A DNA stretch of 64,000 nucleotides, taken from assembly GCF_006345805.1 (NCBI RefSeq), contig NW_021832120.1:186001-250000 (forward strand). Direction: 5' to 3'. Below, piece by piece: positions 15,230 to 59,189 of the stretch; positions within the stretch are counted from its first letter, which is position 1; each line of letters begins with the position of its first letter. The notes beneath the pieces were generated by a model. That model ran no database searches. It saw only the letters and a program-made list of their open reading frames with translations, and was not told the origin of the DNA. Origin of the DNA: Octopus sinensis (Eukaryota). The position numbers and the translations under genes are program-made.

Positions 15230-17558
15230 ATGCTGATTTTAATTCTTTTTATTTGGCTGAAAACTGGTTTAGAAGTATTGGTATAATAGTCTAGAATCTA
15301 CAATTGGAGTAATCTATAACTTTGGCGGACATTCATATGGCTTATCTCTAGAAAAAACGGATGGCGGAACTTACGAAACTTCATGTCCTTCAAACTGGTA
15401 TCCAGTCGACATAACAGATCAAACAGAAAATGACGTTTTAGCAAGTAAATAATAAACTAAATTTCAAGGTGTTTTAAAAGAAGATCACCTTATTGGAGTG
15501 GATTACTATTGGTGGACTGGATCATTAAAAAGCCTGCATACTGGAAAAATATTGGTATTTATTAAAATAGTAAAATAAAAGACATATTCAAACTTTAAGA
15601 ATGGATACCGTTGGTTCGCAGCAGCAGCGTTAGAAGCGCACACCAGTAAATGGATACCCGTTACTTCTTATCACTATAAAAGATACTATATCTGTGAATC
15701 TGGTTAAAATAATGACCTTATTATAAACAGATAATATTTCTTCCAACGGAATTAATATAACCACAGCAAAAATCATAAACAGTAAAAGTATTATTACATC
15801 TTTTAGTCAATCCTGACGATATTTTGACATTTCGTAAACATACATACTATATCTATTACGCATATCGGAATTATTCAACAGCCAGACGAATATGTAACTA
15901 TGAACACAATGGATATATATTCATTCCCAACGATGGCGAAGAAAACTGTGCTTTCCACAGTATATAGATGTCGTTTTAAATCAATTGTTTAGATTATCTT
16001 AAAGGAGACGTATATCTTGGAATTACAATTTTTAATAACAAAGTTTTCACTGAAAAAAATTATGCTGCTGTAATAATAACATTTAAGTCTAAAGAAATAT
16101 CTGCCCTGGGCTCCCAACAGTCCGACATCAGAAGAATGTGTATCTCGTTCATACTCTAACGGAGAATTTATAAGCAGTGATTGTTACAAAAAACAATATG
16201 TAATTTGTGAAACAGGTCAAAAAATCTGGATTAAATATTTAGATGCAATATATGAAAATCCAACATATGTATCATGCAATAGGACCGATTTAAAATGTAT
16301 GCAATTTATTCATATCCAGTCTATTTCGCGCAAATCTTTAATTACAACGAATCCGTTTATTATATTTATGACATGCCAATGTCTTTCAATGAGGCGTTGG
16401 AAGTATGTGAATCTAAAAAGGCACAAATATATGTTCCTAGAAACGAATTTGAGAATTGTTTATTTACTGGTTTTGCGTAATAATTGTTATATAAGAAAAT
16501 GTTGAATTTACGGTTGCATTAAATTATGGAGAATATTTTGTTCGCAAGATAATGAGTCCATTAAATATATCATATTCTGTAAAAAACTATTAATTAAATA
16601 AATAGAATTTTACAAACTGGGCTCCTGGATATCCAGTTCGGATTGAAAATACTGATAAAACTTGCGTTTATCAAAATTATAAAACAGGAAAATGGGAAAA
16701 TAGAATATGCACAGATTCAAGATATGCCTGTGTGAGAAACAACGATCCAGGTGATAATTTAAAAAAATAAATATGTAATAGATATTAGGACAAATGCAAT
16801 ATCAAACTGTAAAAGCATGAATGCAAGTTCAAACCTTATTTATAACATTAGTAAATCCTTCACATCAAGTGACCGTTAAATATGGTGGGACTGAATATAT
16901 ACTATTTGCAATTCCAATGACATTTTATGAAGGCCATATGCTATGCGATAGTATGAATAAACAAGTCATTAATCCAACATCCCAAGATGTCGTAGATTTC
17001 ATAAATACTGGTTAATTATTTTATCATTCGATTTTAGAAACTGTAAATCAGAGTTTTTACATTAACAATCGAATAACGTGGGATGATAACATAATAATGT
17101 ATGATGACGGTCCATTATTGGTATACATAAAAAGTTGATTTAGATGACACCGAATTGGGATGTAAATCAACCTCATGTCATTGATGAAATGATGGCTTGT
17201 ATCAGCATTAATCACAATGGAAAGTGGAAAACAGATTATTGTGGAGAATATAAAATTCCGGTGTGCTCTGGCAAAGAGTCGACTTACTCGACTAGCAGTA
17301 TTTTTTTATAAAAATTGAATTTTAAAAAGGAAGCACTGCTCGAAAAGCAGGAATGGGATTCGGAATATTTATTGGGATAGCTGCGATTGTGGGAATTTCA
17401 GTAGGAATATTTATATTTCTCCGGTTGAAATACTTTTTATTTACATTTAGGAAAAAAAATTTGACTATGATCAGTCTGAAATCTTTCGGAAGCTTTAGAA
17501 CAAGTACATTTTTTATTTCACATGTATAGAGCGAAGTTTCTCCGGAACTTTCGAATAA
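15230..17558 (+). pseudogene. Four-CTLD type I membrane protein, copy 1 (+1 frameshift; probable pseudogene or sequencing error)
   Basis: Same 19-exon structure as copies 2 and 3. An extra base (AACAAAAGTTTTCAC vs AACAAAATTTTCAC) near 16044 gives an in-frame TGA at 16052-16054 in domain 2. Confidence 0.8.
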
Positions 17559-17684
17559 ATTAGTTAGCTATTACTATTTCTTTAATCTCTATTTTTATTA
17601 ATCTGATTTAAAATTATTCACAAAAATTCTCTTTTGGAATTAAAGTTGTTTTTAATGGTGTTGGCCTTGCTTGTCAAGAAATTC

Positions 17685-18060
17685 CCGTTTGAGGTCTGGT
17701 GATTGACTGCCCATTCCAAAACATTTATTTTGTTCTTTGTAACCATTCAACAGTCATTTTTGACTTATGTTTTGGGTTGTTGTCATGGTGGAATGTCCAT
17801 TGTTGTGTTAAATTTGATTTAAAGACCCAACAAAACATGGTTTTTTTTCAGGATTTCGCAATATTTGAGAAAATTCATTATTCTATTTATTACAAATAAT
17901 TTACCCTGTTGATGAAAAACAGCCCCACAACATGATCCTTCCTCCCCCGTGCTTTATGGTGGGTATGGTGCATTTTGGGTTATACGCCTGATTAAATTTA
18001 CGTTTAGTTCAGTCCAAAAAGTTGTATTTTTGATTTATCTGACCATATAATATTCATTTT
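17685..18060 (-). mobile_element. Tc1 transposase remnant
   Basis: [41 protein letters not shown] and a degenerate SPDL motif. Confidence 0.85.
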
Positions 18061-18301
18061 TTTTGTTTTAAAAGATATTTGGCTATTGTCGAGGATCCAG
18101 TAGCTATTTTCGAGAATTTGTCTAACAATTTCTGTCACCGTCCAGACCGGCCGGGGCGCCAGATCGGTCAGGTCAATTATTTAAATACAAAACAAATATT
18201 TTTCCTACAAAACATTTCATTGCAAAAAAATATTGATAATAAAAAAATAAAATCTTATTAATTAAAAAGTTTTAAAAAGTTGAAAAGATTAGCATTAATC
18301 A

Positions 18302-19200
18302 ATGGTTTTAGTTGAATTAAATCGAGACACTCTCGAAAAAATTAGGGAGTATTTGGAATCAGGCCACCTTGATGATTCCTTGAGTTCGGAAGAAAGGGCA
18401 CGAATACGGAGATATGCCAAAAAATTTAGTTTCAAGGAGAACAACACCTACATTTCTAAAAATGGCTCAAAGTTGCGTTTTTTTTGTATCGAAGACACTG
18501 AACTTAAGTTAAAATTCATTGAAGTAGTGTATTTGTTTATTTAAATTAGGCTCAACACAATCTTAATCACTTTGGACGTGATAAATTGTACAGTTTATTG
18601 ACACTCACCATTTATGGTGCCAGACGTACTGATGTGGCATCTGTGGTATCTAAATGTGTTTATTGTCAGGTAAATTACCAATTTTATTAATTCTAGTCGA
18701 AACGATTGCTTACGACTAAACCAGCAATAACGCCTATTACTGCTTCTTCCCCAAGAGAACGATACATTGTAGATCTTATCGATATAAGACGCTATTGGAC
18801 CCGAAATGAAAATTATTCCTGGGTAATTTAGTAATCTAAATAATAGATTCTTGTTTTATTGGATTCCTTTTCAAAATTTGCTATGGTAGAATGTGCTTTT
18901 ACCAAATCAGCTAAGGAGATCCGCTAAGGAGATCCGATGAAAAAAGGAAAAAAGCCCTTGAAAATATTGTAAAATCTGGAGAAAGAATGAAAAGGCGGAG
19001 AAAATGGAAATATGATGAAGTTGAAAGTGGCGATGAAATTTTAATACGCCATGATGGGGATGCAAACCCGGGTTATAGAAAATACCCATTATACGACGAG
19101 ATATCTGCACAAAAATATATTGTGAAAAATAGGGATCGAGAACTCGTAACGATAATTAATGAAGAGGATGAAAAAGATCAAAGGATACATATTAGCAGAG
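18302..19200 (+). pseudogene. Intron-containing retroviral-type integrase/transposase of the Ginger-like element; catalytic core deleted
   Basis: Phase-0 introns 18524-18549, 18670-18696 and 18823-18846 join HNLNHFGRDKL..CVYCQ, PRERYIVDLID and WILVLLDSFSKFA. The frame stops at a duplicated GCTAAGGAGATCC (~18910); a C-terminal piece (ORF 18987-19343) follows. Confidence 0.85.
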
Positions 19201-19371
19201 TAAAAAAAACTTTAACTGCAAATATTTATGGGGTTAGTTCTGTGTTTTTTCTTGTGTCATATTTACTTAATTGTGAAATAATTGTGCCATTGTTACAAAT
19301 TCGACGCGGCCGAAGGCCGCATAGGGAAAAATATTCACATTGAATCATCCGGCCGTAGGCCGGATTGTATT

Positions 19372-22186
19372 TTATTATTATTTTTATTATTATTATTAGA
19401 ACCTAGATCACCGTCCAAACCATAAAACTAATTAATCAGGTGATCCCGGCTTCTTTGAGGAGGGTCCTCAACTTTGCCCGGTGCTCCTCCCTTGTCCCGG
19501 CACAATTTCTGTGAGGGCGCGGTGGTGGTGTTTTAGGGCCTGTAGCCCCGAGGTTTCTTCTCAAGATTTCATTAAATGGGGCGATGAGTAGATGTTCATT
19601 CGGTCCTTGTAGAGCTTTTCGGAAGCGATCTTGAGTTTTCTCGATTTTAACGCGGTTCTTTCCACTGATAAACCCTCCCCACGCCTCACAAGCATAGCTA
19701 AGGGAGGGTTCGATGAATTGCCGGTATAATGCTTGGCGTGCGGGGAAGCTGATCCACTGTCTGCATTTTCGGAGAAACACTTTCAAGATGTTCAGTTTCT
19801 TCATGCAGCTAGTAGTAATATTATCGACTTGTTGAGAGAAACACATGTGACTGTCGTAAGTCACCCCGAGGATTTTCTGGGATTTTTTAAACGGGATTTC
19901 CATGTTATTTAGATACAGGTTCACCACCGTTTTCCCAAGCTTCCTTGCTGAAGTCATAAGCGTGGTGACCGATTTTTCCGGACTCGTTGATAGTCGATTT
20001 AGCGAGAGCCAACTTTCGAGATTGTTAAGGTGGTACTGCAGTTTTGTACTCGCCGTATTCACCTCACGGCTCCGGGTAGCAATTACGATATCGTCAGCGT
20101 ATGATAGTACGATTGAGTTTTTGCCGTTTGGTAGCGGGAGATCCGATAAGAATAAGTTGAAAAGGGCTGGTGAAAGGGGAGAGCCTTGAGGGACTCCGTT
20201 TGGAAAATAACGTGACATCGATCTTGTATTGTTTTGTTGGATCCTGCCTCTTCGGCTGCTGAGGAAGTTAGCTAGCCACATTTTCAGTCTTGGGTGAATT
20301 CCACTAAGGTATATTTTCCTAGTCAGTATTTTTCTGGGAACGGAGTCAAAAGCCTTATGGATATCCACTGAGCACATAACCGTTTTTTGGTTATACGGTT
20401 TGGTAGATAGTCCATCTGAGATGAAGTTCGTCAAAGTGACAAGGTGCGAGGTGGTTGATTTACCACATTTAAATCCATGTTGAAAGTCCAAATTCGGGAG
20501 ATATTGTTTGATGTGGTTGAGTATAAGTTTTTCCAGAACTTTGGAAAGGACGCAGAGGAGAGATATTGGCCTGTAGGACGCCGGGTTGTCTTTTGGTCTC
20601 CCTGGTTTCAGAATAGGGCGGATGTATGCCATTTTCCATAGTGTGGGTATTGCGTTGTTGTTTATAGAAAAGTTGTAAATTTGACAGAGAGCTGATATTG
20701 CCACCTGTCCTAGGTTTTTCACCAGAATAGTAGGAATTCCGTCAGGTCCACAAGAGCCAGTGCTTCTTAAATTTCTGATGGTCTGAGACACCTCCTCTTG
20801 AGTGAGGATAATCATGTCCCGACATCTTCGAGGTTTCAACGACTTCAAGCATGGTCCATCGTATTTCCTGTGGGGGATGTTGCTGATCCCAGCGTAGAAC
20901 TTTATCAGTTTGTTGGTGAAGGGAACCGCATTATCCTCACCCGATTTAAATCTCTCAGGGTTTGTGAATCTTCTTAGGGATGCCCATACTTTTGTTAGTG
21001 GGACCTCCGCATTTAAACCTCTGGCGAACTTTTCGGCCCTCCCGTACCGTTTGTCTTTTGCAGATTGGTCTATGACTTTATTCAGTAGTCTGATCCGATG
21101 CCGGTTATCTTTTGTAAGATGAGGGCGACCTTTCAATGAGTTCCGTTCCTCGATTAGAGGTAGAATCCCAGACGGAAATTTTCTTACTGGTTTTGGATAA
21201 ATTTTTCTCATTCTTAAGAATGATTTTCTTCCAATCAGAATTGTTCGGTAGAAGTGCTTGAGGGCGTTGTCGATCGAGTCGAAATCATGTACATCAAAGT
21301 TAACCAGTGCTTTGTCAATGAATAGGCAAAATTGACCCAATCTGGGTGCTTGTAGTCGTATTTCAGGTTGCGGAACCCCTTTCTAATGGGCAATTTGACT
21401 TGGACTTTTATAATTAACGGATTGTGATCGCTCCGTAGATCGTAGGTAACGCCCCATTTGACCAGAGGTGCGAGGTTGGAAGAACAGAGGGTCAGATCGG
21501 GGGAGGTAGGCTTGTCCTTGGTGTTGTATGGAGTTCTTGTGTGCAGTGAGGGGTTGTTCAGGATTACAAGGTTGTCCAATTGCTCGAGAATAGACTTTCC
21601 TCGGGAGTCAGCAGTTTGTGACTTTAGCCAAAGCGGGTGTTTTGCATTCAAGTCCCCACAGATAATTAGATTTTCGCGATTATCAAACGGGCGTAGATCT
21701 GTGATAAAATGTTTCGGGCGCGATCCTGTTGGTGGGATATACATATTGCAAATCACTGTTTCCAAGTGAGGTGGGGATAGTGATAGCAGAAAATTCCAGA
21801 CTCGTGTTTTTGCTTCCTTTAGAGCTAAGCGAAGGGGAGCTCTCCTGGTAAGTGATTTCCTTCTTAATAAGTGTTATGAGACCCCCTCCACGGCATGAGG
21901 GTCTGTCCAGGCGTTCCATGTGGTAGTTGGGGAAACGTGGGGACCTCGAAGAAGGATTGAGTTTTGTTTCTTGGAGTACACATATGTCGATATCATGGTT
22001 GATCAAAAAAGAGTTTAGTTCTGTTGATTTTCCAGTAACTCCGTTGATGTTTAGTTGGAGAAGTGATATATGTCTCTTTGGGCCGGGATTAGGTTCCACA
22101 TCCCCATAGATAGTGAGAAGGACAAAACGGGAGAGTGAGATCCACAGAGAAGGCCGCCCCGGACTGATGATAGTCGCGGGGGGATG
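19372..22186 (-). mobile_element. APE-RT non-LTR retrotransposon (possibly Ingi/Vingi-like) with a 2A-like motif and (TAA)n tail; two frameshifts
   Basis: APE (LLQLNING, ICVLQETKL, IICGDLNAKH, SDHNP) in ORFs 21683-22099 and 21235-21765; RT (SYRPISLL, QHGFK, DIHKAFDSV, GVPQGSPLSP, YADD) in ORF 19436-21340; no RNase H seen; tail at 19372-19398. The clade name is inference. Confidence 0.92.
22073..22125 (-). other. 2A/StopGo-like ribosome-skipping peptide
   Basis: Frame reads SRFVLLTIYGDVEPNPGP directly before the APE domain, matching D(V/I)ExNPGP. Confidence 0.8.
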
Positions 22187-24450: not shown

Positions 24451-25122
24451 TCTCGCCGTTAACGATTTTTCCTTGTTTTCTTTCGGTTTCTGTTTGCTTT
24501 TGATCAATAAACGACATTCTATTATATTCTAAAAAATCAAAAAGTTGTCTTTATTTTTGATAATAAATAAGCTAACTGTTTTCTGAATCTGTTATTTTCC
24601 CAATAAGAATACAATTTTTTCTCAACCAGGATCAGTTTCATTCCCAATCAAAAAAATGTTTTAATAATTAATAATTTGATTATCTCACTTATACGTTTTT
24701 GGCCAAGATAGGATCAAAAATTTGGATTTTTAGAATTATTTTATATACTATTACCGCATATGAAGAATTCTGTAACAAAAATTATTGTATTTAGGAAAAT
24801 GGCATCTAAATATAATTTTTATAAGCAGCAAAGCAATGATATGCAAACTAAAAAAAGCATTTAAATATTGGAAAATAAATATGTTTTTTGCCAAGAGTTG
24901 GAAGAACAAATGTATTTTTGAAAATGAATTGAATCAATGTTGACCTCTTTAGCCACCTAATAATTTTACCGCAATTAAAATTGTTAAAATATAATAAAAT
25001 CTTTTTACCGCAGTTAAAAAAATGTGAAAGAATTTCTTTAACAATAAAAGCCAAAAACCGGAAAAAGCAATTTAAAAGCTCATTAAAATGATTATATAAA
25101 CAGTTAAAAATGATTGTCAAAA

Positions 25123-27453
25123 ATGCTGATTTTAATTCTTTTTCTTTGGCTGAAAACTGGTTTAGAAGTATTGGTATAATAGTCTAGAATCTACAAATGG
25201 AGTAATCTATAACTTTGGCGGACATTCATATTCCTTATCTGTAGAAAAAACGGCTGGCTATAATTATGAATATTCATGTCCGTCAAACTGGTATCCAGTC
25301 GACATAACAAATCAAACAGAAAATGACGTTTTAGCAAGTAAATAATAAACTAAATTTCAAGGTGTTTTGAGAGAAAATCACCTTATTGGAGTGGATTACA
25401 GTTGGTGGGATGGAGCAGCAGTAAGCATGCATACCGGAAATGATTTGGTATTTGTTAAACTAGTAAAATAAAAGACATATTCAAACTTCAAGAATAGATA
25501 CGGTTGGTTTGATGCAGTCGCGTTAGAAGCGCATACCAGTAAATGGATAGGCGTATCTTCTTATTGGAGAAAATTCTACTACATCTGTGAATCAGGTTAA
25601 AATAATGACTTTATTATGAACAGATACAATTTCTTCCAACGGAATTAATATAACCAAAGCAAAAATCATAAACAGTAGAAGTATTATTCAACCTTTTAGT
25701 AAATCCTGACGATGTTTTTACATTTCGCAAGCATACATACTATATCTATTACGCATATCGGACTTATTCAACAGCCAGACGAATATGTAACAACGATCAC
25801 AATGGATATATATTCATTCCCAACGATGGCGAAGAAAACTGTGCTTTTCACAGTATATATACTGTCGTGTTAAATCATTTGTATAGATTATCTTAAAGGA
25901 GACGTATATCTTGGAATTACAAATTTTAATAACAAAATTTTCACTGAAAAAAATTATGCTGCTGTAATAATAATATTTAAGTCTATAGAAATATCTCCCC
26001 TGGGCTCCTTACAATCCGACAACAAAAGAATGTGTATCTCGTTCATTCCTTAACGGAGAATTTATAAGCAGTGATTGTGACGACAAAAAATATGTAATTT
26101 GTGAAACAGGTCAGCAGATCTAAAGTTAATTTTTAGATGCAATATATGAAAATCCAACATATGTATCATGCAATAGCACCGATTTAAAATGTATGCAATT
26201 GATTAATATCCAGTCTATTTCGCGCAAATCTTTACTTACAACGAATCCGTTTATTATATTTATGACATGCCAATGCCTTTCGATGAGGCGTTGGAAGTAT
26301 GTGAATTTAGAAAGGCACAACTGTATGTTCCTAGAAACGAATTTGAGAATTGTCTATTTACTGGTTTTTCGTAATAATTGTTATATAAGAAAATGTTGAA
26401 TATACGGTTGCATTAAATTTTGGAGAATATTTTGTTCGCGGGATAATGAGTCCATTAAATATATCATATTCAGTAAAAAAATATTTATTAAATAAATAGA
26501 ATTTTACAAACTGGGCTCCTGGATATCCAGTTTGGATTAAAAATACTGATAACACTTGCGTTTATCAAAACTATAAAACAGGGAAATGGGAAAATAGAAT
26601 ATGCACAGATTCAAGATATGCCTGTGTGAGAAACAACGATTCAGGTGATAATTAAAAAAATAAATATGTAATAGATATTAGGACAAATGCAATATCGAAC
26701 TGTAGAAGCATGAATGGAAGTTTAAACTTTATTTATAACATTAGTAAATCCTTCACATCAAGTGGCCGTTGAATATGGTGGGACTGAATATATACTATTC
26801 GCAATTCCAATGACATTTTATGAAGGCCATATGCTATGCGATAGTATGAATAAACAAGTCATTAATCCAACATCCCAAGATGTCGTAGATTTTATAAATA
26901 ATAGTTAATTATTTTATCATTCGATTTTAGAAATTGTAAATCAGAGTTTTTACATTAACAATCGAATAACGTGGGATGATAACATAATAATGTATGATGA
27001 CGGTCCATTATTGGTATACATAAAATAGTTGATTTAGATGACACCGAATTGGGATGTACATCAACCTCATGTCATTGATGAAATGATGGCTTGTATCAGC
27101 ATTAATCACAATGGAACTTGGAAAACAGATTATTGTGGAGAATATAAAATTCCGGTGTGTTCTAGCAAAGATTCGACCTACACAACTAGCAGTATTTTAA
27201 TGTCAAAGTTGAACTTTAAAAAGGAAGCACTGCTCGAAAAGCAGGAATGGGAGTTGGGATATTTATTGCAATAGCTGCAATTGTGGGAATTTCAGTTGGA
27301 TTATTTATATTTCTTCGGTTGAAATTCTTTTTATTTACATTTTAGGAAAAAAAATCTGACTATGAACAGTCTGAAATCTTTTGGAAGCTTTAGAACAAGT
27401 ACATTTTTTATTTCACATGTATAGAGCGAAGTTTCTCCGGAACTTTCGAATAA
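25123..27453 (+). CDS. Type I membrane protein with signal peptide, four C-type-lectin-like domains, TM helix and short tail; copy 2 (intact, 19 exons, ~610 aa)
   Basis: 18 GT-AG introns of about 23-34 nt give an open frame: MLILILFLWLKTES.., domains ending YICE, YVICE, YACVR and IPVCS, motifs LPWAP and FTNWAPGYP, TM GVGIFIAIAAIVGISVGLFIFL, tail RKKNLTMNSLKSFGSFRTKRSFSGTFE. Confidence 0.9.
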
Positions 27454-27999
27454 ATTATTTAGCTATTACTATTTCTTTAATCTCTATTTTTATTAATCTG
27501 ATTTAAAATTATTCACAAAAATTCTCTTTTGGAAATAAAGATATTTTTAATGGTTTTAGCCTCCCTTGTCAAGAAATTCCCGTTTTATATTTAGCCGAGT
27601 TCTTTCAGAGACACTTTCGTAGTTTTCTTAAAAGAAAATCAATGGATATAAGAATGTATGCACTCATATATACCAGATTTGTAAGTATCGTATTTGGTGA
27701 CCATACATTTAAACTATTATTCAATTTTTATCGCTAAATTAGAGTCAACTGAATTATCTCATTATGAGTCCAGCAAAAATAGTGGAAATTACACTATTTA
27801 ATTAAGGTTTTCACTCCTTATTGTTGGAGATCATTCTTCTCTTTCTAGGGAAAGAATTTTCTGCTAGTCCCTCGCTCTCCCCGGACAAAGTTTTTAGTGA
27901 ACCCTCGCAAATTTCCCATTTTTGGTACATGAAAATGTTATGATCAATTTAGACACGTTTAAATTTAATTATAATTTAATCCCCAATTCGTGTTTATTT

Positions 28000-28720: not shown

Positions 28721-28721
28721 A

Positions 28722-28970: not shown

Positions 28971-28979
28971 AAAAAAGGC

Positions 28980-30150: not shown

Positions 30151-31410
30151 GCATAGCTTGCCTTATTATTATTATTTTAACCCAAGAATCACCAACAGTT
30201 AATTAGGGTAATTAATTAGGTGATTCCAACAATCCTCAAAATCTTTCTCAGCTTTTCCCGATGTTGGACTCTGGACCCAACGCAAGTGCGGGACGGGCGG
30301 GGAGCAGTTTTTGTGAGTAATTGGATCGGGGTGATGTGCTTCTGGTTGTTAAAGTCTTTTGGCAGGTGGTCTTGTTGGATGGCTAAGAAACCCTTTCCAT
30401 CTTTCTTAATAAGTTGGTCAAGCGGAGTTGGGGTAATGTTGTTCAATTTGGAAATTCTCGTTATGCTAGTCGCGGCTCGGCATAGTGTAGTCTCAATTTT
30501 GAGGCGGTTAGACCATGAGAGATTAGAACCCCAAGCGGCGCAGGCATAGCCAATTGTTGGTTCGATGAATTGTTTGTAGAGAGTGCCGAGAGCCGGGAAA
30601 GGTGTCTTTAGTCCACCAAAAATCGATTTGATTAGTCCAATCTTTCTCTGACTGGATCCGATGGCCTTCTCTAAATGGGCAGTAAAACACATGTGGGTGT
30701 CAAAAGTGACCCCCAGAATTTTAGGGTTCTTCGTGAATGGGATTTTTTCGTTGTCCAGAAAAAGATCAATAGTAAGGCTTCCAAGTCTCTTGTCCGACGT
30801 AAATAGGGTAGTGGACGATTTTTCGGGGGAGATGTTCATCCTGTTTTGATATAGCCAAATTCAAATTTGTAATAAGAGATCTTGTGTTCTTTTGGAAGCT
30901 TTCGAGAGGTCTTGGTCACGTGATCCAGTGAGTAGGTCGTCAGCGTAGGCGAGAATGATTGAGTCTTCCATTTCAGGGTTAGGAATGTCGGATAGGTATA
31001 AATTGAATAGAGCAGGAGAGAGGGGGAGCCTTGGGAAACTCCGTTTGGAAGTAATCTCGAGATTGATTTGATTCCATTCAGGCATACACGCGCTCTCCTT
31101 CCGCTGAGGAAATTCGAAAGCCAGAGTTTTAGTTCGAGTCGATAAATAGGCCGAATATTTTTTGAGTCAGTATCTTTCTAGAGACCGAATCAAAGGCCTT
31201 CTGAAGATCGAGTGAGCATACAATTGATTTGAGATGAGGTCTAGTTGCAAAACCTTCCATTATAAACTGGGTTAATGTGGTAAGATGTGTCGAGGTAGAG
31301 AAGTTACTCCTGAAGCCATGTTGGATATGAGTAAGGGGGAGAATAGGGGTGATCAAATCGAGAATTAGTTTTTCAAGAATCTTTGTAATCTTAATAATAA
31401 AATGGTATGG

Positions 31411-31442
31411 TGTGTGTCTGTCTGTCTGTCTGTCTGTCTGTG

Positions 31443-31473
<31 letters not shown>

Positions 31474-31478
31474 GTGTG
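31411..31478. repeat. (TGTC)n microsatellite near the Helitron 5' end
   Basis: Run of TGTC units with TGTG interruptions. Confidence 0.95.
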
Positions 31479-31504
31479 CACACAACTTCAAATTGGCAAT
31501 ACGA

Positions 31505-32860
31505 TGTCCTCGACTTACATGATGAGGTCCTTAAAACCTTCCCCCCAAAAAAATTAAAAAATTTTCTGCATTTTGGTTAAAATGAACAACTACAATGTCC
31601 TCGACTTACATGATGAAGTCCTTAAAACCTTCCCCCCCAAAAAAATTAAAAAAAAATTTTCTGCATTTTGGTTAAAATGAACAACTACAATGTCCTCGAC
31701 TTACATGATGAAGTCCTTAAAACCTTCCCCCCCAAAAAAATTAAAAAAAAATTTTCTGCATTTTGGTTAAAATGAACAACTACAATGTCCTCGACTTACA
31801 TGATGAAGTCCTTAAAACCTTCCCCCCCAAAAAAAATTAAAAAAAATTTTCTGCATTTTGGTTAGAATGAACAACTACAATGTCCTCGACTTACATGATG
31901 AAGTCCTTAAAACCTTCCCCCCCAAAAAAAATTAAAAAAAATTTTCTGCATTTTGGTTAAAATGAACAACTACAATGTCCTCGACTTACATGATGAAGTC
32001 CTTAAAACCTTCCCCCCAAAAAAATTAAAAAAAATTTTCTGCATTTTGTTTAAATGAACAACTACAATGTCCTCGACTTACATGATGAAGTCCTTAAAAC
32101 CTTCCCCCCAAAAAAATTAAAAAAAAAATTTTCTGCATTTTGGTTAAAATGAACAACTACAATGTCCTCGACTTACATGATGAAGTCCTTAAAACCTTCC
32201 CCCCCAAAAAAATTAAAAAAAAATTTTCTGCATTTTGGTTAGAATGAACAACTACAATGTCCTCGACTTACATGATGAAGTCCTTAAAACCTTCCCCCCA
32301 AAAAAAATTAAAAAAAAATTTTCTGCATTTTGGTTAAAATGAACAACTACAATGTCCTCGACTTACATGATGAAGTCCTTAAAACCTTCCCCCCAAAAAA
32401 ATTAAAAAAAAATTTTCTGCATTTTGGTTAAAATGAACAACTACAATGTCCTCGACTTACATGATGAAATCCTTAAACCTTCCCCCCCAAAAAAATTAAA
32501 AAAAAATTTTCTGCATTTTGGTTAAAATGAACAACTACAATGTCCTCGACTTACATGATGAAGTCCTTAAAACCTTCCCCCCAAAAAAAATTAAAAAAAA
32601 TTTTCTGCATTTTGGTTAAAATGAACAACTACAATGTCCTCAACTTACATGATGAAGTCCTTAAAACTTTCCCCCCCAAAAAAAATAAAAAAAAATTTTC
32701 TGCATTTTGGTTAAAATGAACAACTACAATGTCCTCGACTTACATGATGAAGTCCTTAAAACCTTCCCCCCAAAAAATCAAAAAATTATTTTCTGCATTT
32801 TGATTAAAATGAACAACGTGAATGTCCTCGACATTCATGATGAGGTCCATTAAAACCTTC
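31505..32860. repeat. Tandem satellite, ~95-bp unit, 14 full copies plus a partial one
   Basis: TGTCCTC(G/A)AC recurs at 31505, 31596, 31691, 31786, 31881, 31976, 32068, 32163, 32258, 32353, 32447, 32541, 32635, 32730 and 32823; units differ mainly in homopolymer length. Confidence 0.97.
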
Positions 32861-33076
32861 AAGGCAAAATCTCACGTATTAAGAATATCCTTGATGAAAA
32901 CGACAGCGAGAATATTAACAATGATGAACTCCCAATTATTCGCGATAAAGAAATTCAATTCATCCTATGTTTTTCTCTTTAAAATTAAATGCATATATCA
33001 TTATCGACCATGAATCAAAATTAAAGCTATTATCATATTGACTTTGACAGAATGTGCAATCACAGATTGCACGACT

Positions 33077-33273
33077 TTGAATAGAGTGTGCAAGTAACAG
33101 ATTTAGAAAAACCACTTTGATAGTTGAAACCACATTAGCACAATCATTAACACAATTTACCACCAATTGACGCACGACCTTGAATAGAGTGTGCAATTAA
33201 CAGATTTTGAAAAACACTTTGATAGTTGAAACCACATTAGCACAACCATTAACACAATTTACCACCAATTGAC
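33077..33273. repeat. ~104-bp direct duplication inside the Helitron
   Basis: TTGAATAGAGTGTGCAA..CACAATTTACCACCAATTGAC occurs twice in tandem. Confidence 0.85.
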
Positions 33274-35419
33274 AGCGCAATCAGAAGAATTTGCGTAAAA
33301 ATATTAACTATTTACTTGAGTTTTTCGTAAAGATAGAATTTATTTTCGGTATGCCTCTTTTCCTAAACTTTTTTATTATTCAAAAATAATTTTTTAAATA
33401 GATAACCGAAGGAGGAAAAACGAAGCTGAAGAAAAAACGGTCAGCTTAATAAGGTAATTAATTAAATCTTTTTTGTGTGTCGCTTTCTTGCCTGCCGCAT
33501 TTCCGCCTGCCGTATCTCCCCCTGCCCCATTTCCGCCAGTAAAAAATAAAAAAAGGAAATTACAAAGGAAAAATGAAAAAATTAAATATAAAAAAAATAA
33601 ACCACAAAAAATGAAAAAAAAAGTTTGCAATGACAATAAACAAGGCCCAGGGACAGTCATTAAAGTAGTTGGGTTATTTTTAGAGAGTGAGTGCTTTTCA
33701 CATGGACAGCTGTATGTGGGATGCTCGAGGGTAGGCAGAAGAGAAAATTTATTCATATATGCCAAGGAAGGACGGACGACAAACATCGTTTATCAACAGG
33801 CGATAGAATAGGGTTACATTAAACCAGGTAGTTTTATACATCTACATAAACTTATAGTTGTTTGATGAAACAGGCCCTCCGCAGGAGCTAGGTCGCGGTG
33901 AGCGAAGCGAGCTGCCGAGCTAGTTGAACATAAAAGTGAAATGGGTCTGTAGGAGGAGGGGACGTTCTTCGGTCGACCCGGCTTGAGAATTGGGCGTATA
34001 AGAGAATTTTTCCATATATTTGGTATTTGATTCTGGTTAACGGAATAGTTGAAAATGTTAGTCATTGCATCAATTCCGATGGGACCAAGGTGCTTTAGCA
34101 AGGTTGTTGGGATCAAGTCTGGTCCACAGGATAGGGATGATTTTGTACTGGTAATCACTGCTGCAACTTCAGCAGGGGATATATAGGTCCGTGGGTTTGG
34201 TTTCTTTGGTTTATTGTTTACATAATGAGCGTTTATCTTTAGATAATTCTTGTGGCTGATTCCGGCGTAGAATTTCATGAGTTTACTCAATTCAGATTGA
34301 CTTTTCTGTTCGGAGTCTTTGCAATAGTTGGCGGGTCTGAACTTTTTGAGTGTGTTCCACATGTGTTGGGTAGATTTTTCCTTATCAAGAGTTTTGATTT
34401 GTTTTTCCCATCTTCTTCTTTGGGATGCTTTCAGTTTCTTAGAAATTATATCATTTAGGTTCTTTATTTCTTTTCTTCCTCCAGGAATAGAAATTGGATT
34501 CTTTTTAAGAAAGTTTCTTTTCCTGATAAGGATTTTTGTCTCCTAGTCGAGATTTTGTTCGAAGTGATGAAAAGTGCATTTTGGGATGAATAGTTTTCTA
34601 CCCAGCAAGATCGCCTCATTTAGGTGCTTGACAGCTCCGTCGATTGATTTGAACAGTTTAGTATCAAAGTTTTGTAGCAGTGCGTCAGTGAAGTTGGCAT
34701 ACCCCTCCCAGTTTGCGTTCTTGTAATTGAAAAAGTACATAGCTTTGTTCGTACGGGGAAGGGCTTTTTTGATGATGATTGGATTGTGATCTGAATTAAG
34801 ATCGTAGTCTACTGTCCATGAAATGGCTGAGGATAGGTTAGTTAAGGATAGTGTAATGTCCGGGGATGTTAAGCGTTCGGTATCCTTATAAGGTGTCCTA
34901 GTGTGGGTCTTCGGATTGTTGAGGAAAGACATGACAGAGAGTTGTTCCAATAGAGACCATCCTCTTGAGTCTGCCCGTTAAGATTTAAGCCAAGTCGGAT
35001 GCTTTGCGTTTAAGTCTCCGCAAATTAAAAGGTTCTTTAAATTGGATAGCTTTGAGAAGTTTGGATTGAATCCCTTTGGACGGAGGGGGTGGAACATATA
35101 TGTTGGCAATAGTGGTCTTTCCAAATTTAGTATTCAGCGTGATTGGATTCATCTCGACATCGCTCGAAAGCAGAATACTCAAGCCTTTTGTCCATCGGGT
35201 GCTGAGAGCCCGGGATTGTCGTCTGGATAATTCCAGCTGGGAAGAGTGAATGGTTCTTTTGTCGAATGCTTTAGGAGCATTCTGTGCGCCTCCAGATTTG
35301 CAATAACTGGTGAACCACATAACGCAATAAACACGCTCTTATGTAACAATTTAAAAGTTCTGCAGATAATTTTAAATTAATTACTATTTTTGTTTTATTT
35401 TCAGTTTTTATTTTTTGTT

Positions 35420-37469: not shown

Positions 37470-37830
37470 GTTCGGACTGTAGTTGGTTCCCCACAAAGGA
37501 ATACGGGGATACCCGTATTATTTATCTGGAAAAAGCTTTGAGAGATCTAAAAGAAAAAATCGAAAGTCTGAACAGTCACTTGGTGGAACTCATTTACGCG
37601 GATGATGTTTATTTTGTCGCGGAAAATCTGGAATTTATAGACATTATTATGGAGAAAGCAAAAACAATTTTGAGCAAACTGTCTCTAAAGTCAATGAAAT
37701 AGAACAGAATATTGAACAAATGCCTATTCGCGTGGAGACGTAAAGGAACACCCAAAACTCGGTTCTTTACTTGGCAACTCAAAAGATATTAAACGGCGAA
37801 AAATATTGGCCACAATAACTCTCAAAAAAT
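37470..37830 (+). mobile_element. RTE-like RT fragment
   Basis: YLEKALRDL..ELIYADDVYFV, similar to the element at 53230-54960. Confidence 0.65.
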
Positions 37831-38599: not shown

Positions 38600-39159
38600 T
38601 TACCAGTCTAGTCTATTGTTTCTTATAGAATCGACTAGTAAGTAAAGATCACGCGCAGCTCTAGTTCGTGACCACGAGTCATAATTTTCGAATTCAAAGT
38701 CCAGAATGATTCTGGCCATTTCCTTTAATGATTTCTTTTCGCTGCCAGAATTTTTCATCATTTTAACGAGTTCTGGACACAAATATGTGTCGAAACAGTC
38801 AAAATAATGAATGTTAAATTCTAGGCAGGCGAAAAATTGGCTAAGGTCGTGACCAATTATGAGTGTGTCCTATAACTATAGACCAAACATATTATTACTT
38901 TCAGGATATCGAATATTATTGCTCTCGCTCTACGGAATGAGATTGAGTCATCCAGATCATACGGATGGACTCCTCCATACTGAGTCCGATAATTCGTGAC
39001 TAATTGGTTTGGTGTAATAAAGCTTTCGAAAAGGATGTTTAAGTCATTATCGACAATAAGACAGTGCGCTAAAATATATTTCAACAAAAAAGAGATACCT
39101 ATTGCAGATTTCTTTGGATATACCTCCACGAATTTCCAAGAGACAGAAACGTACATCAA
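38600..39159 (-). CDS. REXO4/ISG20-like DEDDh exonuclease-fold protein with catalytic residues replaced; 5' exon(s) uncertain
   Basis: Removing a 30-nt intron (~39070-39099) and a 29-nt intron (~38870-38898) gives YVSVSWKFVEVYPKKSAIAHCLIVD..VTNYRTQYGGVHP..ILKDTLIIGHDLSQFF..SLKEMARIIL..YDSWSRTRAARDLY, colinear with the REXO4 exonuclease domain as recalled. Confidence 0.75.
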
Positions 39160-39529
39160 TAAATTATATTTAACTTCCTTTTTAATACTATTTCTGTGGA
39201 GGTTAACAAATTAAAAATGTATATTATATTTAAAATATAAATAAAATTAAATTATTTATTTTAAAATTCTAAGAAGATTTTATTCAATAGTTTTGTTTTG
39301 GTAAGGTGGTGACATGCCTTGTTTCTTTTCCGTACAACGGTTAAGAAAAATTTGTAAAAAGCAGAAGATACAGAGAATATGCTTGCCCTAAAGATTCTTA
39401 CGTCCAATACATGCTGAATATCTAAGCCTAAGTCAAGAAATATTCTTTGTGACGACCTAGAAAGATTTAAAGTTTTTATTGGATGCATACAAGAAACAAA
39501 AATTACGCATTACCTCGATGAAAATATGG

Positions 39530-39880
39530 AAAATATTGACTATTATGTTTACCCAGTGACTCAAAACACTATGGTCTCGGATTTGTCATTGACAGAAACT
39601 ATCAGCTGACACTTGGCGGGTGAATGATAGGATCTGCCTAATACAGATCGATCTGAACAACCAAAGTTCCTCTAAACAATTATAAATGTATATGTGCCAC
39701 ACTGTGGAAGAGTGGCAAAAAATCCGACTGAACTGGATGAATTCTACTCAGCATTACAAAAACATACAAATTCCTCACTTATATTCATTTCCGGCGATCT
39801 AAATGCAAAAATCGGAATAAAAAAGAACTCAGAAAATAGGAAGACACGGACGTGCGAAAAGAAATTTGCCTGGGATTATA
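39530..39880 (+). mobile_element. APE endonuclease fragment of an RTE-like LINE
   Basis: INVYVPH..ELDEFYSALQ..LIFISGDLNAKIG. Confidence 0.7.
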
Positions 39881-40189
39881 TACAATACAATTAATAGATA
39901 GCTGTTTTGGAAATCCGTTATTTCTCTAATAAGAATATTTACAACATTTTTTACCGGCATCAGTCTTAGATTATACCTAACTTTTTTGATTGGAAATTAA
40001 ATTTATATAATTTTATTTATTCGAAAAAATATATTATTTTATCTAAGTTTTTTATTTCAAATTGTCACGTTTATTATTTGTTGTTTTGAAAAAGAGAAAG
40101 TGGAATGATAATTATGTCCGTTTTGGATTTAAATATACTAAAATCGATGATCTTTAAAGGCCCGAATATTTTTTATGTGAGGCTATATT

Positions 40190-41900
40190 CTCTAACCAGA
40201 ATATGAAACCTTCCAAACTGGAACAGCATTTTCTAAATAAACCTGGTGGAACTAATATTAGCGGCAATGATTTCAAATCTCTAAAAATCGAGAGAGCTGG
40301 ATATGATTCCCAAGTGACTCGTCCTAACTTAGGATTTGTATATCTTGAATACCGATTTTGCTTGCCTCTTATAAAGTGGCCTATAACATCGCAAAGTCTA
40401 AAAAGCCACAGATTTGATTAAACTATGTGCATTGGAAATGGTCTCATTAATACTTGGAACAGAGTCAAGACAAAAGATTGAATCAGTCCCGCTATTTAAT
40501 AATATAATTCACAGTCGAATATGTTAGTTAAGCTATGATATTTTGTCCCAAATTATTCAAGTCTTTTCCTTATATTTCTATGATATTTTGTCCCGAACGA
40601 ATCAACTGATGTCTCTAATTGTAGTCAACTTATTGCACTAGTGAGGTATTTTCCATGATGGTGCATCGAAAGAAGATTTTTTGGTTTATGAAAAATTAAA
40701 AATAACCACGAAAGGAATAGATGTCTTTAACATTGTTAAAGATTTTTTTATGAAACATGATTTGGATATCCAGACAATAGGGTCTATTTGTACAGACGGT
40801 GCTTCAGCAATGCTGGGAAATATTATCCGGTTTTGCTAGGCTATTATAGAATGAAATCCCGAACATAAGGATTAAGCATCGCTTTCTTCATCCCTATGCA
40901 TTACCTGTTAAAACTCTCTCCCAATTGTTGAAAAATGTACTTTACACCAGTGTAAAAATTATTAACTGGATAAGAGATCGTGCTATGAACCATCGAATTT
41001 TTAAAACAATTTGCAGTGGTCTTGGCAACAATGATTCTATTTTATTATTTCATACCGAAATTAGCTAACCCTTAACCCGTATCTTTGAGTTAAGAGAAAT
41101 AAAATTACTTCTTCATAAAAAAACGTCAATGTTTAATAAAATTAATATGTAAATTCTATCTTAAATTATTTAGAATCCAGATCGTCAGTGATTCTCTTCT
41201 TCTTCGCTTGGAAGAAGAGTTTGCAACAAAATTCTCATCATTTTCCATATTCTGCGTCAAAGTAATGTTCAACTGAGTGTCCTCACACATGCCAGCTCCG
41301 CAATTGATTGGCGGCAGAGGCGTACTCCTCGTTGTCTACCTTCATCCCATGTCTGTGTTCAATAAGCATACTCTCTAGAGTCCTCTTCAGCACAACCGAC
41401 GATGTATGTCTCGTTCCTTCTTCAATCACGAATTTCCCAACCTTAGAAAAGGTGGTCGACAATTCAATGAATCCTACTTTTCGTAAAGAAATTATATCTC
41501 ATTTAAAAGTATTGTCCACGTTTTTTGAGGGATATTTCGGAACGGATCTAAATATTACAGATGAATGGATTTTGAGTACATTTTCGTATAATCTGAAAAT
41601 TATGTCAAAGGATCATGAACTAAAAGAAGATCGGATTGATCTTCGAACAAACAAAGCACTTAAAATAGAGTTTCACAATTGTACATTGGAGCAGTTTTGG
41701 AGTTCAGTAGTGAAAATGTATCCAAAATTATCTCAAAAGGCTTTGTATGAAATTATTCCATTTGAAACGACATACTTATTCAAGTCAGGATTCAGCTCTC
41801 TTTTGGCAATTAAAACTAAATACAGAAATCGCCTGAATCCTGAACATTTGTATTGCGATTATCAAAAAAGTGCCAAGATTTGACAAAATCATTGAAAATA
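40190..41900 (+). mobile_element. Decayed hAT (Buster/ZBED5-like) transposase, interrupted at 41165-41420
   Basis: MKPSKLEQHF, ESTDVSNCSQL, ICTDGASAMLG, LLFHTEI and PFETTYLFKSGFSSLLAIKTKYRNRL. Confidence 0.85.
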
Positions 41901-42049
41901 AACAAGAAAAAAGAAGCCATTAATTGTTTACTTTTGTTATTGTATATTATTATTATAGCCGTACCGCAAGATGGCAACAAAATGTTGACATTTCTCATGA
42001 GCCAGCCACATAAGATCAAGACAGAGAGAGAACATGTTATTAAGAAATT

Positions 42050-42360
42050 AACTAATCCAAACGTGTTCCGTAACATTTTCTCCGTTAGTCTCGACAGGAT
42101 TTTCTGTTGCACGCGATAACTTTGAGGTTGTCTAGGTCGTCCGCCGACTTCAGTTTCAGACAAATCGTAGAGAGATCCTCATTTATGATGGTCGGAAGCG
42201 TCGCTCGTGGTCTACCACGGAATCCAGATCCCGTCTGCGCGAAGAAATAATCCACTGCAATCTTCGCTGGAACCAGGTCGTTTAAACATAGAAAATGGCC
42301 AAAAAGGCTCCATCTCGATCTGAAGATATCATCTGACAGGACATCGGATTTGCATTTATT
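42050..42360 (+). mobile_element. Possible degenerate CRE-like fragment
   Basis: GC-rich island; TTESRSRLREEII resembles TGEARTRLVKAI of the element at 740-2790. Weak similarity only. Confidence 0.35.
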
Positions 42361-42905
42361 ATATTTTTTTCGAGCTTCTTCGTTGAAACAAAAAGGTTTA
42401 TTTTTGTATTTTTAAACAAAATAATAATTTTTTGTTGAATTGACCTCGTAAGCATCTAATTTTCTTAAAAGATAAGATCAAAAAGTGGTATTTTTGGAAA
42501 TATTTTTTGTATTGTTGAACGTTACCACATTTAAGAATTTTGCTAAAAAAGGCATTGTATTTTGGAAAATTGCATCTAAATATAATTTTTCTAAGCCGCA
42601 AAGCAATTATATAGAAAATCGAATTACCATTTACAAGTTGGAAAAAAAGCATGTTTGTTGATAAGTTAAAACACTGAAAAATCTTCATGGCAATTAAATT
42701 CGAATTTTGATGCCTTAAAAATTTTTAGAAATCTAATAATTCGACAGTTACCTAATTGTTAAGAATATAATAAAACTTTTTACCGAAATTACACCAAAAT
42801 ATGCAATGAATTTCTTTAACAATGATCAATGAAAAGCAACAATTGAAAAGTAATTTAAAAGCCCATTAAAATAATTATATAAACAGTTAAAAATAATTGT
42901 AAAAA

Positions 42906-45235
42906 ATGCTGCTTTGGATATTTTTTCTTTGGCTGAAAACTGGTTTATGAGCATTGAAATAATAGTTTAGAATCTACAAATGGAGTAATCTATAACTTTG
43001 ACGGACATTCATATTCCTTATCTGAAGATAATACGTTTTTATATTTTTACGAATATTCATGTCCGATGGACTGGTATCCTGTCGACATAACAAATCAAAA
43101 AGAAAATGACGTTTTAGCAAGTAAATAAATAACTAAATATCAAGGCGTTTTGAGAGAAGATCGCTTTATTGGAGTTGAATACAGCTATTGGAATGCAAGG
43201 CCAGAAAGCCTTCATACCGGAAATGCATTGGTATTTGTTAAACAGGTGATATCAAAGACATATTCAAACTTCAAAGACCCCTCCTCTTATTTCAATGGAG
43301 TTAAATTAGAAGCGCACACCAGTAAATGGAAACGCATTATTTCTTGGTGGGAAGAAGGTTCATATATTTGTGAATCTGGTTAAAATAATGAGTATTATAA
43401 ACAGATACAATTTCGCCTGAAGGAATAAATATAACATCATCAAAATTCATAAACAGTAAAATTATTATTCAAACTTTTAGTCAATCCTGACGACATTTTT
43501 ACATTTCGCAAACATACATACTATATCTATTACGCATATCGGACTTATTCAACAACCAGACGAATATGTAACAACGATCACAATGGATATATATTCATTC
43601 CTAATGATGGCGAAGAAAATTGTGCTTTCCACAGTATATATACTGTCGTTTTAAATCATTTGTTTAGGTTATCTTAAAGGAAACGTATATCTTGGAATTA
43701 CAAAGTTTAATAACAAAATTTTCACTGAAAAAAATTATGTTGCTGTAATAATAATATTTAAGTCTATAGAGATATCTCCCCTGGGCTCCTTACAATCCGA
43801 CAACAAAAGAATGTGTAACTCGTTCATTCCTTAACGGAGAATTTATAAGCAGTGATTGTTACGACAAAAAATATGTGATCTGTGAAACAGGTCCGCAGAT
43901 CTAAAGTTAATATTTAGATGCCATATATGAAAATCCAACATATATATCATGCAATAGCACCGATTTAAAATGTATGCAATTGATTAATATCCAGTCTATT
44001 TCGCGCAAATCTTTAATTACAACGAATCCGTTTATTATATTTATGACATGCCAATGCCTTTCGATGAGGCGGTGAAAATGTGTGAATTTAGGAATGCACA
44101 ACTATATGTTCCTAGAGACGAATTCGAGAATTGTTTATTTACTGGTTTTGCGTAATAACTGTTATAAAAGAAAATGTTGAATATACGGTTGCATTAAATT
44201 ATGGAGAATTTTATGTTCGCGGGATACTGAGTCCATTAAATATATCATATTCAGTGAAAAAATATTTATTAAATGAATAGAATTTTACAAACTGGGCTCC
44301 TGGATATCCTGTTTGGATTAAAAATACTGATAACACTTGCGTTTATCAAAACTATAAAACAGGGAAATGGGAAAATAGAATATGCACAGATTCAAGATAT
44401 GCCTGTGTGAGAAACAACGATCCAGGTGATAATTAAAAAAATAAATATGTAATAGATATTAGGACAAATTCAATATCGAACTGTAAAAGCATGAATGGAA
44501 GTTTAAACTTTATTTATAACATTAGTAAATCCTTCACACGAAAAGACGGTTAAATATGATGGGACTGAATATATACTATTTGGAATTCCAATGACATTTT
44601 ATGAAGGACATATGCTATGCGATAGTATGAATAAACAAGTCATTAATCCAACATCTCAAGATGTCGTAGATTTCATAAATAATCGTTAATTATTTTATCA
44701 TTCGATTTTAGAAATTGTAAATCAGAGTTTTTACATTAACAATCGAATAACGTGGGATGATAACATAATAATGTATGATGACGGTCCATTATTGGTATAC
44801 ATAAAAAGTTGATTTAGATGACACCGAATTGGGATGTACATCAACCTCTTGTCATTGATGAAATGATGGCTTGTATCAGCATTAATCACAATGGAACTTG
44901 GAAAACAGATTATTGTGGAGAATATAAAATTCCGGTGTGTTCTAGCAAAGATTCGACCTACACAACTAGCAGTATTTTAATGTCAAAGTTGAACTTTAAA
45001 AAGGAAGCACTGCTCGAAAAGCAGGAATGGGAGTTGGGATATTTATTGCAATAGCTGCAATTGTGGGAATTTCAGTTGGATTATTTATATTTCTTCGGTT
45101 GAAATTCTTTTTATTTACATTTTAGGAAAAAAAAACTTCCCATGAGCAGTCTGAAATCTTTCGGAAGCTTTAGAACAAGTATATTATTTATTTCACACGT
45201 ATAGAGCGGAGTTTCTCCGGAGATTTCGAATAAAT
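42906..45235 (+). CDS. Four-CTLD type I membrane protein, copy 3 (intact, 19 exons)
   Basis: Same intron positions and open spliced frame as copy 2; starts MLLWIFFLWLKTES, ends RKKKLPMSSLKSFGSFRTKRSFSGDFE. Confidence 0.9.
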
Positions 45236-59185: not shown

Positions 59186-59189
59186 ACGA

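Follow-up and report, generated by a model that had tools for sequence, protein, structure and literature searches.

Three paralogous genes for C-type lectin-like type-I membrane proteins with a variable outermost domain

The stretch analysed here (the window) comprises 64,000 nucleotides of contig NW_021832120.1, positions 186,001 to 250,000, in an assembly filed under Octopus sinensis (GCF_006345805.1), with a GC content of 34.6% and no N. Comparison of the window with itself by BLAST reveals three copies of a unit of 2.5-2.9 kb at 15130-17690, 25023-27585 and 42845-45378 that are 88-92.6% identical, and each of them holds a gene (copies 1, 2 and 3) for a type-I membrane protein built from four domains, three of them recognisable C-type lectin-like domains (CTLDs) and an outermost one, domain 1, in which the differences between the copies are concentrated.

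Three genes with a common structure

Copy 1 (15230..17558, plus strand) was spliced by hand into 19 exons coding for 608 amino acids, and the models of copy 2 (25123..27453) and copy 3 (42906..45233), both on the plus strand and of 608 amino acids as well, were carried over via a three-way alignment; all three are known here from genomic sequence alone. Their proteins share 88% and 81% identity, respectively, with that of copy 1. The 608-codon frame runs from an ATG at 15230, 25123 and 42906 to a TAA stop ending at 17558, 27453 and 45233 and is open throughout. Exon lengths are equal across the copies (37, 150, 86, 121, 51, 153, 77, 121, 54 and 150 nt for exons 1-10; 83, 145, 27, 159, 83, 154, 94, 53 and 29 nt for exons 11-19), and the three-way alignment contains no indel in any exon. 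Each copy has 18 introns of 23-43 nt, mostly 23-28 nt, at the same positions in all three, and the splice signals of all 54 introns are of the form GT(a/t)...AG only. The spliced models thus reproduce the three copies and 18 common intron positions reported in the initial annotation. Neighbouring copies are separated by 7.5 kb and 15.4 kb with different transposon fragments and a 95-bp satellite in between, and the homology among them extends beyond each gene by no more than 100-420 bp on the upstream side and about 150 bp on the downstream side. The three genes are probably paralogs, dispersed in tandem, from a family of type-I surface receptors specific to the lineage.

From N- to C-terminus the protein consists of a hydrophobic N-terminus, MLILILFIWLKT, taken as the signal peptide, four domains of about 120 amino acids with short linker exons between them, a stalk rich in Ser and Thr, one helix and a tail. 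In copy 1 the transmembrane helix, read from the translation, covers amino acids 559-581 (17353..17421, plus strand) and is followed up to 17558 by the coding sequence of a cytoplasmic tail of 27 amino acids, which is basic and Ser-rich (RKKNLTMISLKSFGSFRTKRSFSGTFE) and contains no Tyr. On the whole protein of copy 1, a Pfam search at E <= 1 finds only Lectin_C (PF00059; 77.3 bits, 1.9e-21), in three stretches. These correspond to domains 2, 3 and 4, encoded by the exon triplets 6-8, 10-12 and 14-16 with linker exons 9 and 13 between them (15807..17297, plus strand), and each passes the gathering score of 22.6 bits individually, with 36.3, 27.7 and 36.0 bits.

Domain 1 begins at amino acid 13, right after the signal peptide, and searched on its own does not match Pfam Lectin_C in any of the three copies. 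It is assigned as the fourth CTLD unit because of three lines of evidence. First, a three-exon unit is repeated four times along the gene (150/86/121 nt in domain 1; 153/77/121, 150/83/145 and 159/83/154 nt in the others), with a linker exon after each domain and the intron phases 1-1-0-1 recurring once per domain. Second, hhalign aligns domain 1 with domains 2-4 over its full length (108 columns, E = 0.0033), but with a stated probability of just 9.8%. Third, its best match in the PDB is human mannose-binding protein 1hup, a weak one (E = 0.21), which pairs ENDVLASVL...IGV...TYSNF with ENGAIQNLI...LGI...TYTNW. The four CTLDs proposed initially are therefore recognised by Pfam for domains 2-4, and for domain 1 they depend on the exon pattern, hhalign and the weak mannose-binding protein match.

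Judged by these alignments, domain 1 appears to be a stripped-down CTLD; it retains only the outer cysteine pair (C43-C129) and is without sugar or Ca2+ motifs. Alignments among the domains and with mannose-binding protein reveal no EPN/QPD plus WND pair (Ca2+ site 2) in any of the four domains; the residues at the equivalent positions are KNG.../WIP in domain 1, APN(Y)/FIS in domain 2, APG/WEN in domain 3 and VNQP/WKT in domain 4. The best solved matches of the domain profile are LY75 (1e-29), PLA2R (4e-27), FcRY (6e-21) and MRC1 (7.5e-15), in a score that sums many weak domain matches and does not imply orthology.

The three copies have all 17 cysteines in common. This number, which refers to the ectodomain, is odd, and extra cysteines are found in all copies at positions corresponding to amino acids 196, 277 and 330 of copy 1 (exons 6, 9 and 10); they belong to linker exon 9 and, within domains 2 and 3, to the 'ENC' motif. 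The odd count suggests an inter-domain disulfide and one cysteine that may be free or engaged in an intermolecular bond.

Variation in the outermost domain

Domain 1 covers exons 2-4 together with introns 2 and 3 (amino acids 13-131) and lies on the plus strand at 15295..15702 in copy 1, 25188..25595 in copy 2 and 42971..43378 in copy 3. It represents 20% of the protein length and holds 27 of 74, 47 of 118 and 39 of 81 amino-acid differences in the three pairwise comparisons, an enrichment over the rest of the protein in each of them (Fisher p = 3e-4, 3e-9 and 1e-10). These differences fall into four patches, whose coordinates are based on the codon table, patch statistics and site-model posteriors: patch A (amino acids 28-41; 15339-15380 in copy 1, 25232-25273 in copy 2 and 43015-43056 in copy 3), patch B (amino acids 74-90; 15501-15551, 25394-25444 and 43177-43227), patch C (amino acids 98-107; 15600-15629, 25493-25522 and 43276-43305) and patch D (amino acids 116-126; 15654-15686, 25547-25579 and 43330-43362). 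Between the patches runs a conserved framework with the motifs YNF.GHSY, ENDVLASVL, IGV, HTG, TYSNFK, LEAHTSKW and YICES.

The exon 4 peptides quoted in the initial annotation proved exact, as did its other peptides, with copies 2 and 3 differing there at 17 of 40 residues and in exon 16 at a single nucleotide and a single amino acid. Its description of the patches as rich in Tyr and Trp also holds (Tyr 12.8%; Trp 6.4% as compared to 1.7% in domains 2-4), and Ser (11.5%) and Gly (9.0%) are enriched in addition. Despite near-wholesale replacement, with up to half of the bases in these loops differing, patch lengths are unchanged between the paralogs. Three codon triplets cited earlier as examples of a third base that is often kept, act/gat/aat, cgt/ggt/tct and ccc/ggc/cgc, were located at codons 79, 101 and 117; the rule drawn from them is not general, as the variable sites in the patches are distributed over the three codon positions as 26, 31 and 26. 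The ratio of transitions to transversions is about 0.5 in the patches and about 1 elsewhere.

Alignment to mannose-binding protein would place patches B, C and D on the usual ligand face of the CTLD. Patch B would lie where the long loop starts, after the WIGL-type strand, patch C would stand in place of the EPN loop, patch D would comprise the WND strand and the beta4-beta5 loop, and patch A would correspond to the beta1-alpha1 loop.

The contrast between exons and introns is sharpest for copies 1 and 2. Across exons 2-4 they differ at 56 of 357 sites (15.7%), as opposed to 4 of 107 (3.7%) in introns 1-4 (p = 8e-4), and intron 2 is identical in the two (0/24), as had been noted before. Elsewhere in the gene, divergence between these copies is 8.6% in introns and 8.1% at synonymous sites, an agreement indicating that the tiny introns are not generally frozen. 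Within domain 1, synonymous differences also exceed those in the introns (10/55.7 versus 4/107, p = 0.006). Furthermore, 14 of the 37 codons changed in domain 1 differ at two or more bases, five of them at all three, as compared to 10 multi-base changes and no triple among the 67 changed codons in the rest of the gene.

The grouping of the copies shifts along the gene. Introns 1-3 unite copies 1 and 2 (14 sites versus 2), whereas from exon 16 to intron 17 all but one of 25 informative sites unite copies 2 and 3. In this latter region, a tract of 285 nt in copy 2 (27070..27354, plus strand; part of exon 16, intron 16 and exon 17) is identical to 44850-45134 of copy 3, and copy 1 differs from it by 12-15%; it reads as a recent gene-conversion tract. 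This mosaic grouping and the identical tract imply that the copies exchange sequence, yet the patches of domain 1 remain distinct.

Selection, replacement and the competing explanations

Pairwise estimates by the Nei-Gojobori method, made on only three sequences, separate domain 1 into two parts. In its framework, synonymous divergence (dS) is 0.16-0.25 and the ratio of nonsynonymous (dN) to synonymous divergence, omega, is 0.16-0.26, which is stricter than in the rest of the gene (dS 0.10-0.15, omega 0.35-0.46). In the patches, which were picked post hoc, dN reaches 0.41-0.78 and omega 0.84-1.56. Segments across domains 2-4, helix and tail have omega values of 0.14-0.83, with 0.14-0.38 in the transmembrane and tail segment. 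A codon site model with a class of omega above one (M2a) is preferred over the model lacking it (M1a) for domain 1 (likelihood ratio 29.8, p = 3e-7), with 24.5% of codons at omega of about 8, and the 25 sites with a posterior above 0.8 form four clusters that coincide with patches A-D. No such class is needed for amino acids 132-608 (likelihood ratio 0.17). Domains 2-4, stalk, helix and tail are under purifying selection and partly homogenised by gene conversion, and the architecture of constant stalk and variable tip put forward initially is borne out, with the differences in domain 1 clustered in patches.

A process specific to the patches of domain 1 is required, at p of about 3e-7 whichever way it is modelled. 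The explanation we favour, and consider reasonably probable, is that the genes encode paralogous receptors with a constant stalk and a variable tip whose domain 1 carries a diversifying binding surface. The patches would form the ligand-binding surface of a recognition site for non-sugar, protein-type ligands, and diversifying selection, hitting the same codons repeatedly, would keep the paralogs different there. Short conversion tracts from other family members may assist this diversification, and conversion together with purifying selection would hold the remainder of the protein constant. On the surface of a parasite whose introns are ultra-short, such a protein may serve in recognition or adhesion.

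Several points weigh against this reading. The limits of the patches were set after inspection of the data, and over the whole of domain 1 omega stays below one (0.54-0.79, with dS of 0.24-0.45). The half of the domain that contains the ligand face (amino acids 74-127), a boundary set in advance, gives an omega of 0.49-0.78 with bootstrap intervals that span 1, and local dS is raised in domain 1 as well. The codon likelihoods stem from our own implementation (GY94, F3x4 codon frequencies, a three-taxon star tree and separate branch lengths for domain 1), and once double and triple codon changes are allowed, the test for omega above one in domain 1 drops to a likelihood ratio of 5.0 (p = 0.08). 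Positive selection is consequently not demonstrated independently of the mutation process, because the multi-nucleotide model removes the class of omega above one. The reading is further based on the genomic sequence of three copies, and the tail contains neither a Tyr-based nor a dileucine endocytic motif, so that nothing indicates a role in uptake comparable to the mannose receptor's. Hence, the strong diversifying selection proposed in the initial annotation is supported in part only, by the site model but not by the domain-wide omega or by the multi-nucleotide model.

It is conceivable, at a low but appreciable probability, that the patches were overwritten by short templated multi-nucleotide events, such as micro gene conversion from more diverged family members at other places in the genome, possibly intron-less or fragmentary donors, under approximately neutral constraint and with selection for the most part tolerating the outcome. 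M1a extended by multi-nucleotide changes (log-likelihood -885.49) fits domain 1 as well as M2a (-885.46), and the fitted share of such changes among substitutions is 21% in domain 1 as compared to 8.5% elsewhere. The excess of multi-base codons between copies 1 and 2 described above, including the five triples, points in the same direction, as do the low ratio of transitions to transversions in the patches, third codon positions that vary as much as first ones, synonymous differences exceeding those of the introns, and conversion that is demonstrably active between the copies. On the other hand, the 64 kb of the window contain no donor, with tblastn matches confined to the three genes, 13-mers of the patches recur elsewhere in the window in only two matches at chance level, and in known receptor and toxin families a multi-hit pattern also arises when hot-spot codons are selected repeatedly. 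The substitution spectrum of the patches is compatible with selection or replacement alike, and with three sequences repeated positive selection and multi-nucleotide replacement by short conversion tracts cannot be separated.

Relaxed constraint appears unlikely. Here, domain 1 would be a degenerating CTLD whose loops drift neutrally and escape homogenisation, so that their variability has no function. Consistent with this, the inner disulfide of domain 1 is lost, its score is below the Pfam threshold, the domain-wide omega of 0.5-1.0 has intervals that include 1, and the multi-nucleotide-aware test is not significant at p = 0.08. However, dN in the patches amounts to 2-3 times the dS of the framework and, for copies 1 and 2, to about 10 times the divergence of their introns; the framework is more conserved than the remainder of the gene. 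Not a single indel has arisen in the loops, although up to half of their bases differ, none of the three reading frames and none of the 54 splice sites is broken, and a composition rich in Tyr, Trp, Ser and Gly is typical of binding sites.

A more far-reaching possibility, which we judge quite improbable, is that a templated process restricted to exons diversifies domain 1, in the form of short conversion tracts from intron-less or fragmentary cassettes at other places in the genome or of somatic change in clonal lineages. This would fit the whole-codon replacements confined to domain 1, the ratio of transitions to transversions of about 0.5 in the patches, the excess of synonymous over embedded-intron divergence and the strictly kept domain length, four observations that ordinary point mutation alone does not account for. 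If true, a very simple parasite would thereby possess variable-tip receptors or variant adhesins in a combinatorial repertoire.

An assembly artefact, with alleles or collapsed repeats misplaced in tandem, is very improbable: the region is repeat-rich, which lends the idea no direct support, the copies lie 7.5 and 15.4 kb apart with distinct transposon fragments and the satellite between them, their homology ends within a few hundred bases of each gene, they differ by 7-12% overall in a structured and codon-aware manner, and the window is free of N. Dedicated hypermutation, whether adenine-directed retro-mutagenesis like that of diversity-generating retroelements (DGRs), as the initial annotation had considered, or somatic hypermutation or assembly of domain 1, is hardly credible: the CTLD fold is an established scaffold of DGR variable proteins, several reverse-transcriptase open reading frames (ORFs) lie within a few kb and the length-preserving replacement of whole codons is limited to defined patches, but A, C, G and T contribute similarly to the differing bases in every pair with each copy as the would-be template, blastn, tblastn and 13-mer searches of the window find no template repeat and no further copy or fragment of exons 2-4, two conserved introns interrupt the variable region, the reverse transcriptases of the window are ORFs or fragments of endonuclease-type elements without long terminal repeats (non-LTR), and the variation observed is germline variation between paralogs. 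The DGR form in particular is largely refuted by the base spectrum, the lack of a template in the window, the introns in the variable region and the reverse transcriptases, which are of the type found in long interspersed nuclear elements (LINEs).

Surroundings, lineage and relation to known systems

The genes are embedded in repetitive DNA. A LINE reverse-transcriptase fragment, detected by self-BLAST and an RVT_1 match in ORF 14524-15177, is inserted upstream of copy 1 (14077..15129, minus strand). This insertion of about 1 kb splits the upstream homology of copies 1 and 2 (14034-14076 corresponds to 24979-25021) and thus interrupts the promoter region of copy 1 at 100 bp ahead of the ATG. 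Just upstream of this gene is an 88-bp tandem repeat in three copies (13743-14004). Between copies 1 and 2, a near-complete non-LTR retrotransposon (19436-21765, minus strand) forms an island of 45% GC with an Exo_endo_phos_2 endonuclease ORF and a reverse-transcriptase ORF of 634 amino acids, whose best relatives among 5.8 billion proteins are 36-45% identical and belong to jockey/BS-type elements. In addition to ORF 14524-15177, reverse-transcriptase ORFs or fragments matching RVT_1 were found at 803-2338 and 53659-54605. The ORFs at 30216-30839, 33814-34362 and 51121-51979 look like element fragments by eye only, and Pfam yields no match for 30216-30839, 33814-34362 or 51121-51921.

Between copies 2 and 3, a (TGTC)n run (31411-31477) is followed by the 95-bp satellite (31500-32860; 14.4 copies, 95% identical), and a 102-bp duplicated unit lies at 33069-33273. 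DNA-transposon remnants are present at 12221-13255 (plus strand) and 3878-4447 (minus strand), comprising a Tc1/mariner transposase split into a helix-turn-helix ORF and a DDE_3 ORF and a Tc5/pogo-type helix-turn-helix ORF. A pair of 58-bp inverted repeats about 1 kb apart (10288-10345 and 11241-11298, 93%) resembles the ends of a small non-autonomous element, and dispersed direct repeats at 52054-52185 and 59898-60030 (133 bp, 93%) and at 13502-13647 and 50556-50698 (146 bp, 84%) are probably transposon fragments. On the minus strand, ORF 63483-63851 encodes a CCHC zinc knuckle followed by Arg/Ser-rich repeats that derive in part from a tandem repeat of 45 bp (63526-63671). The ORF looks like the C-terminal half of a splicing factor of the SR type, and the gene overruns the end of the window. 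The ORF at 58793-59254, which we took to be possibly CD2BP2-like, has no Pfam match, and no claim is made for it. Rfam and tRNA scans of the window found nothing.

The full-length protein of copy 1 and a nine-domain profile have no match among 5.8 billion proteins, in collections that do not contain Dicyema or Myxobolus sequences, and scans of metagenome and prokaryote genome contigs for exact patterns from the conserved framework of domain 1 and from exon 15 returned nothing. The lineage is suggested by the introns. In a survey of 51 genomes, animal introns with a length below 30 bp are known only in myxobolid myxozoans and Dicyema japonicum (PMC13644364), so the ultra-short introns probably point to a dicyemid or myxobolid lineage. 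The genome of D. japonicum has 36.7% GC, 49% repeats and many LINE ORF2 copies (PMC6736024), and in Myxobolus honghuensis C-type lectin (CLEC) genes are expanded and LINEs are few (PMC8855578). A dicyemid would fit better than a myxobolid because the window is LINE-rich like D. japonicum, whereas M. honghuensis has few LINEs; at 34.6%, the GC content of the window is also close to that of D. japonicum. A 'macrophage mannose receptor' cluster of 15 copies (OG_10592) with a reading in terms of endocytosis has been described in D. japonicum (Lu et al., 2019; PMC6736024, Table S3). The three genes resemble the families of both species, compared by published description only, as a multi-copy CTLD family in a lineage with tiny introns. 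For those families, copy number was reported together with a reading as endocytosis or immune mimicry, and no hypervariable distal domain (PMC6736024; PMC8855578). Likewise, no description of a hypervariable distal CTLD, nor of a link between Dicyema and lectins, was found in the literature searched.

If the source is a dicyemid or myxobolid, these are animals of a few dozen cells or less, in which lectin-like expansions have so far been read only as uptake or immune mimicry. Three constant domains with a diversifying tip would then supply concrete candidates for recognition of the host, for adhesion or for variation of the surface, with about 25 defined codons offered for testing. The genes also present a clean, small case in which site-model evidence for positive selection vanishes once multi-nucleotide changes are allowed, which bears on how such families are reported.

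Among known systems, the mannose receptor family (MRC1, PLA2R1, LY75/DEC-205, MRC2/Endo180 and FcRY) is similar in consisting of type-I proteins with tandem CTLDs, most of them without sugar motifs. In contrast to that family, the proteins described here lack the N-terminal ricin-type Cys-rich and FNII domains (Pfam finds Lectin_C only), contain four CTLDs rather than 8-10, and have a tail without Tyr and hence without an internalisation motif of the FxNxxY type. The variable proteins of DGRs, such as Mtd of Bordetella phage and TvpA of Treponema, share the CTLD-type scaffold with massive, length-preserving surface variation in a fixed framework. However, a template repeat, a dedicated reverse transcriptase and adenine-specific changes are required of a DGR and absent from the window, and DGRs are prokaryotic or phage systems without introns, whereas the variable region here is split by introns.

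The closest functional analogues may be clustered, fast-evolving CTLD recognition proteins, namely the rodent Ly49/KLR natural-killer receptors and the snake-venom C-type lectin-like proteins, in which clustered paralogs likewise concentrate their changes in the loops of the CTLD ligand face and which bind non-sugar protein ligands. In these families, coding sequence diverges faster than introns, and genes are subject to birth, death and conversion. Accelerated evolution has been documented for venom gene families (PMC6062510). Both groups consist of single-CTLD proteins, either type-II membrane proteins or secreted heterodimers, whereas here one variable CTLD sits above three constant ones on a type-I stalk, and, unlike in those families, selection is not yet separable from multi-nucleotide replacement. 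Taken together, the comparison suggests that what is new is the arrangement, a diversifying, disulfide-poor CTLD atop three constant CTLDs on a type-I stalk, and that the lineage in which it occurs is new as well.

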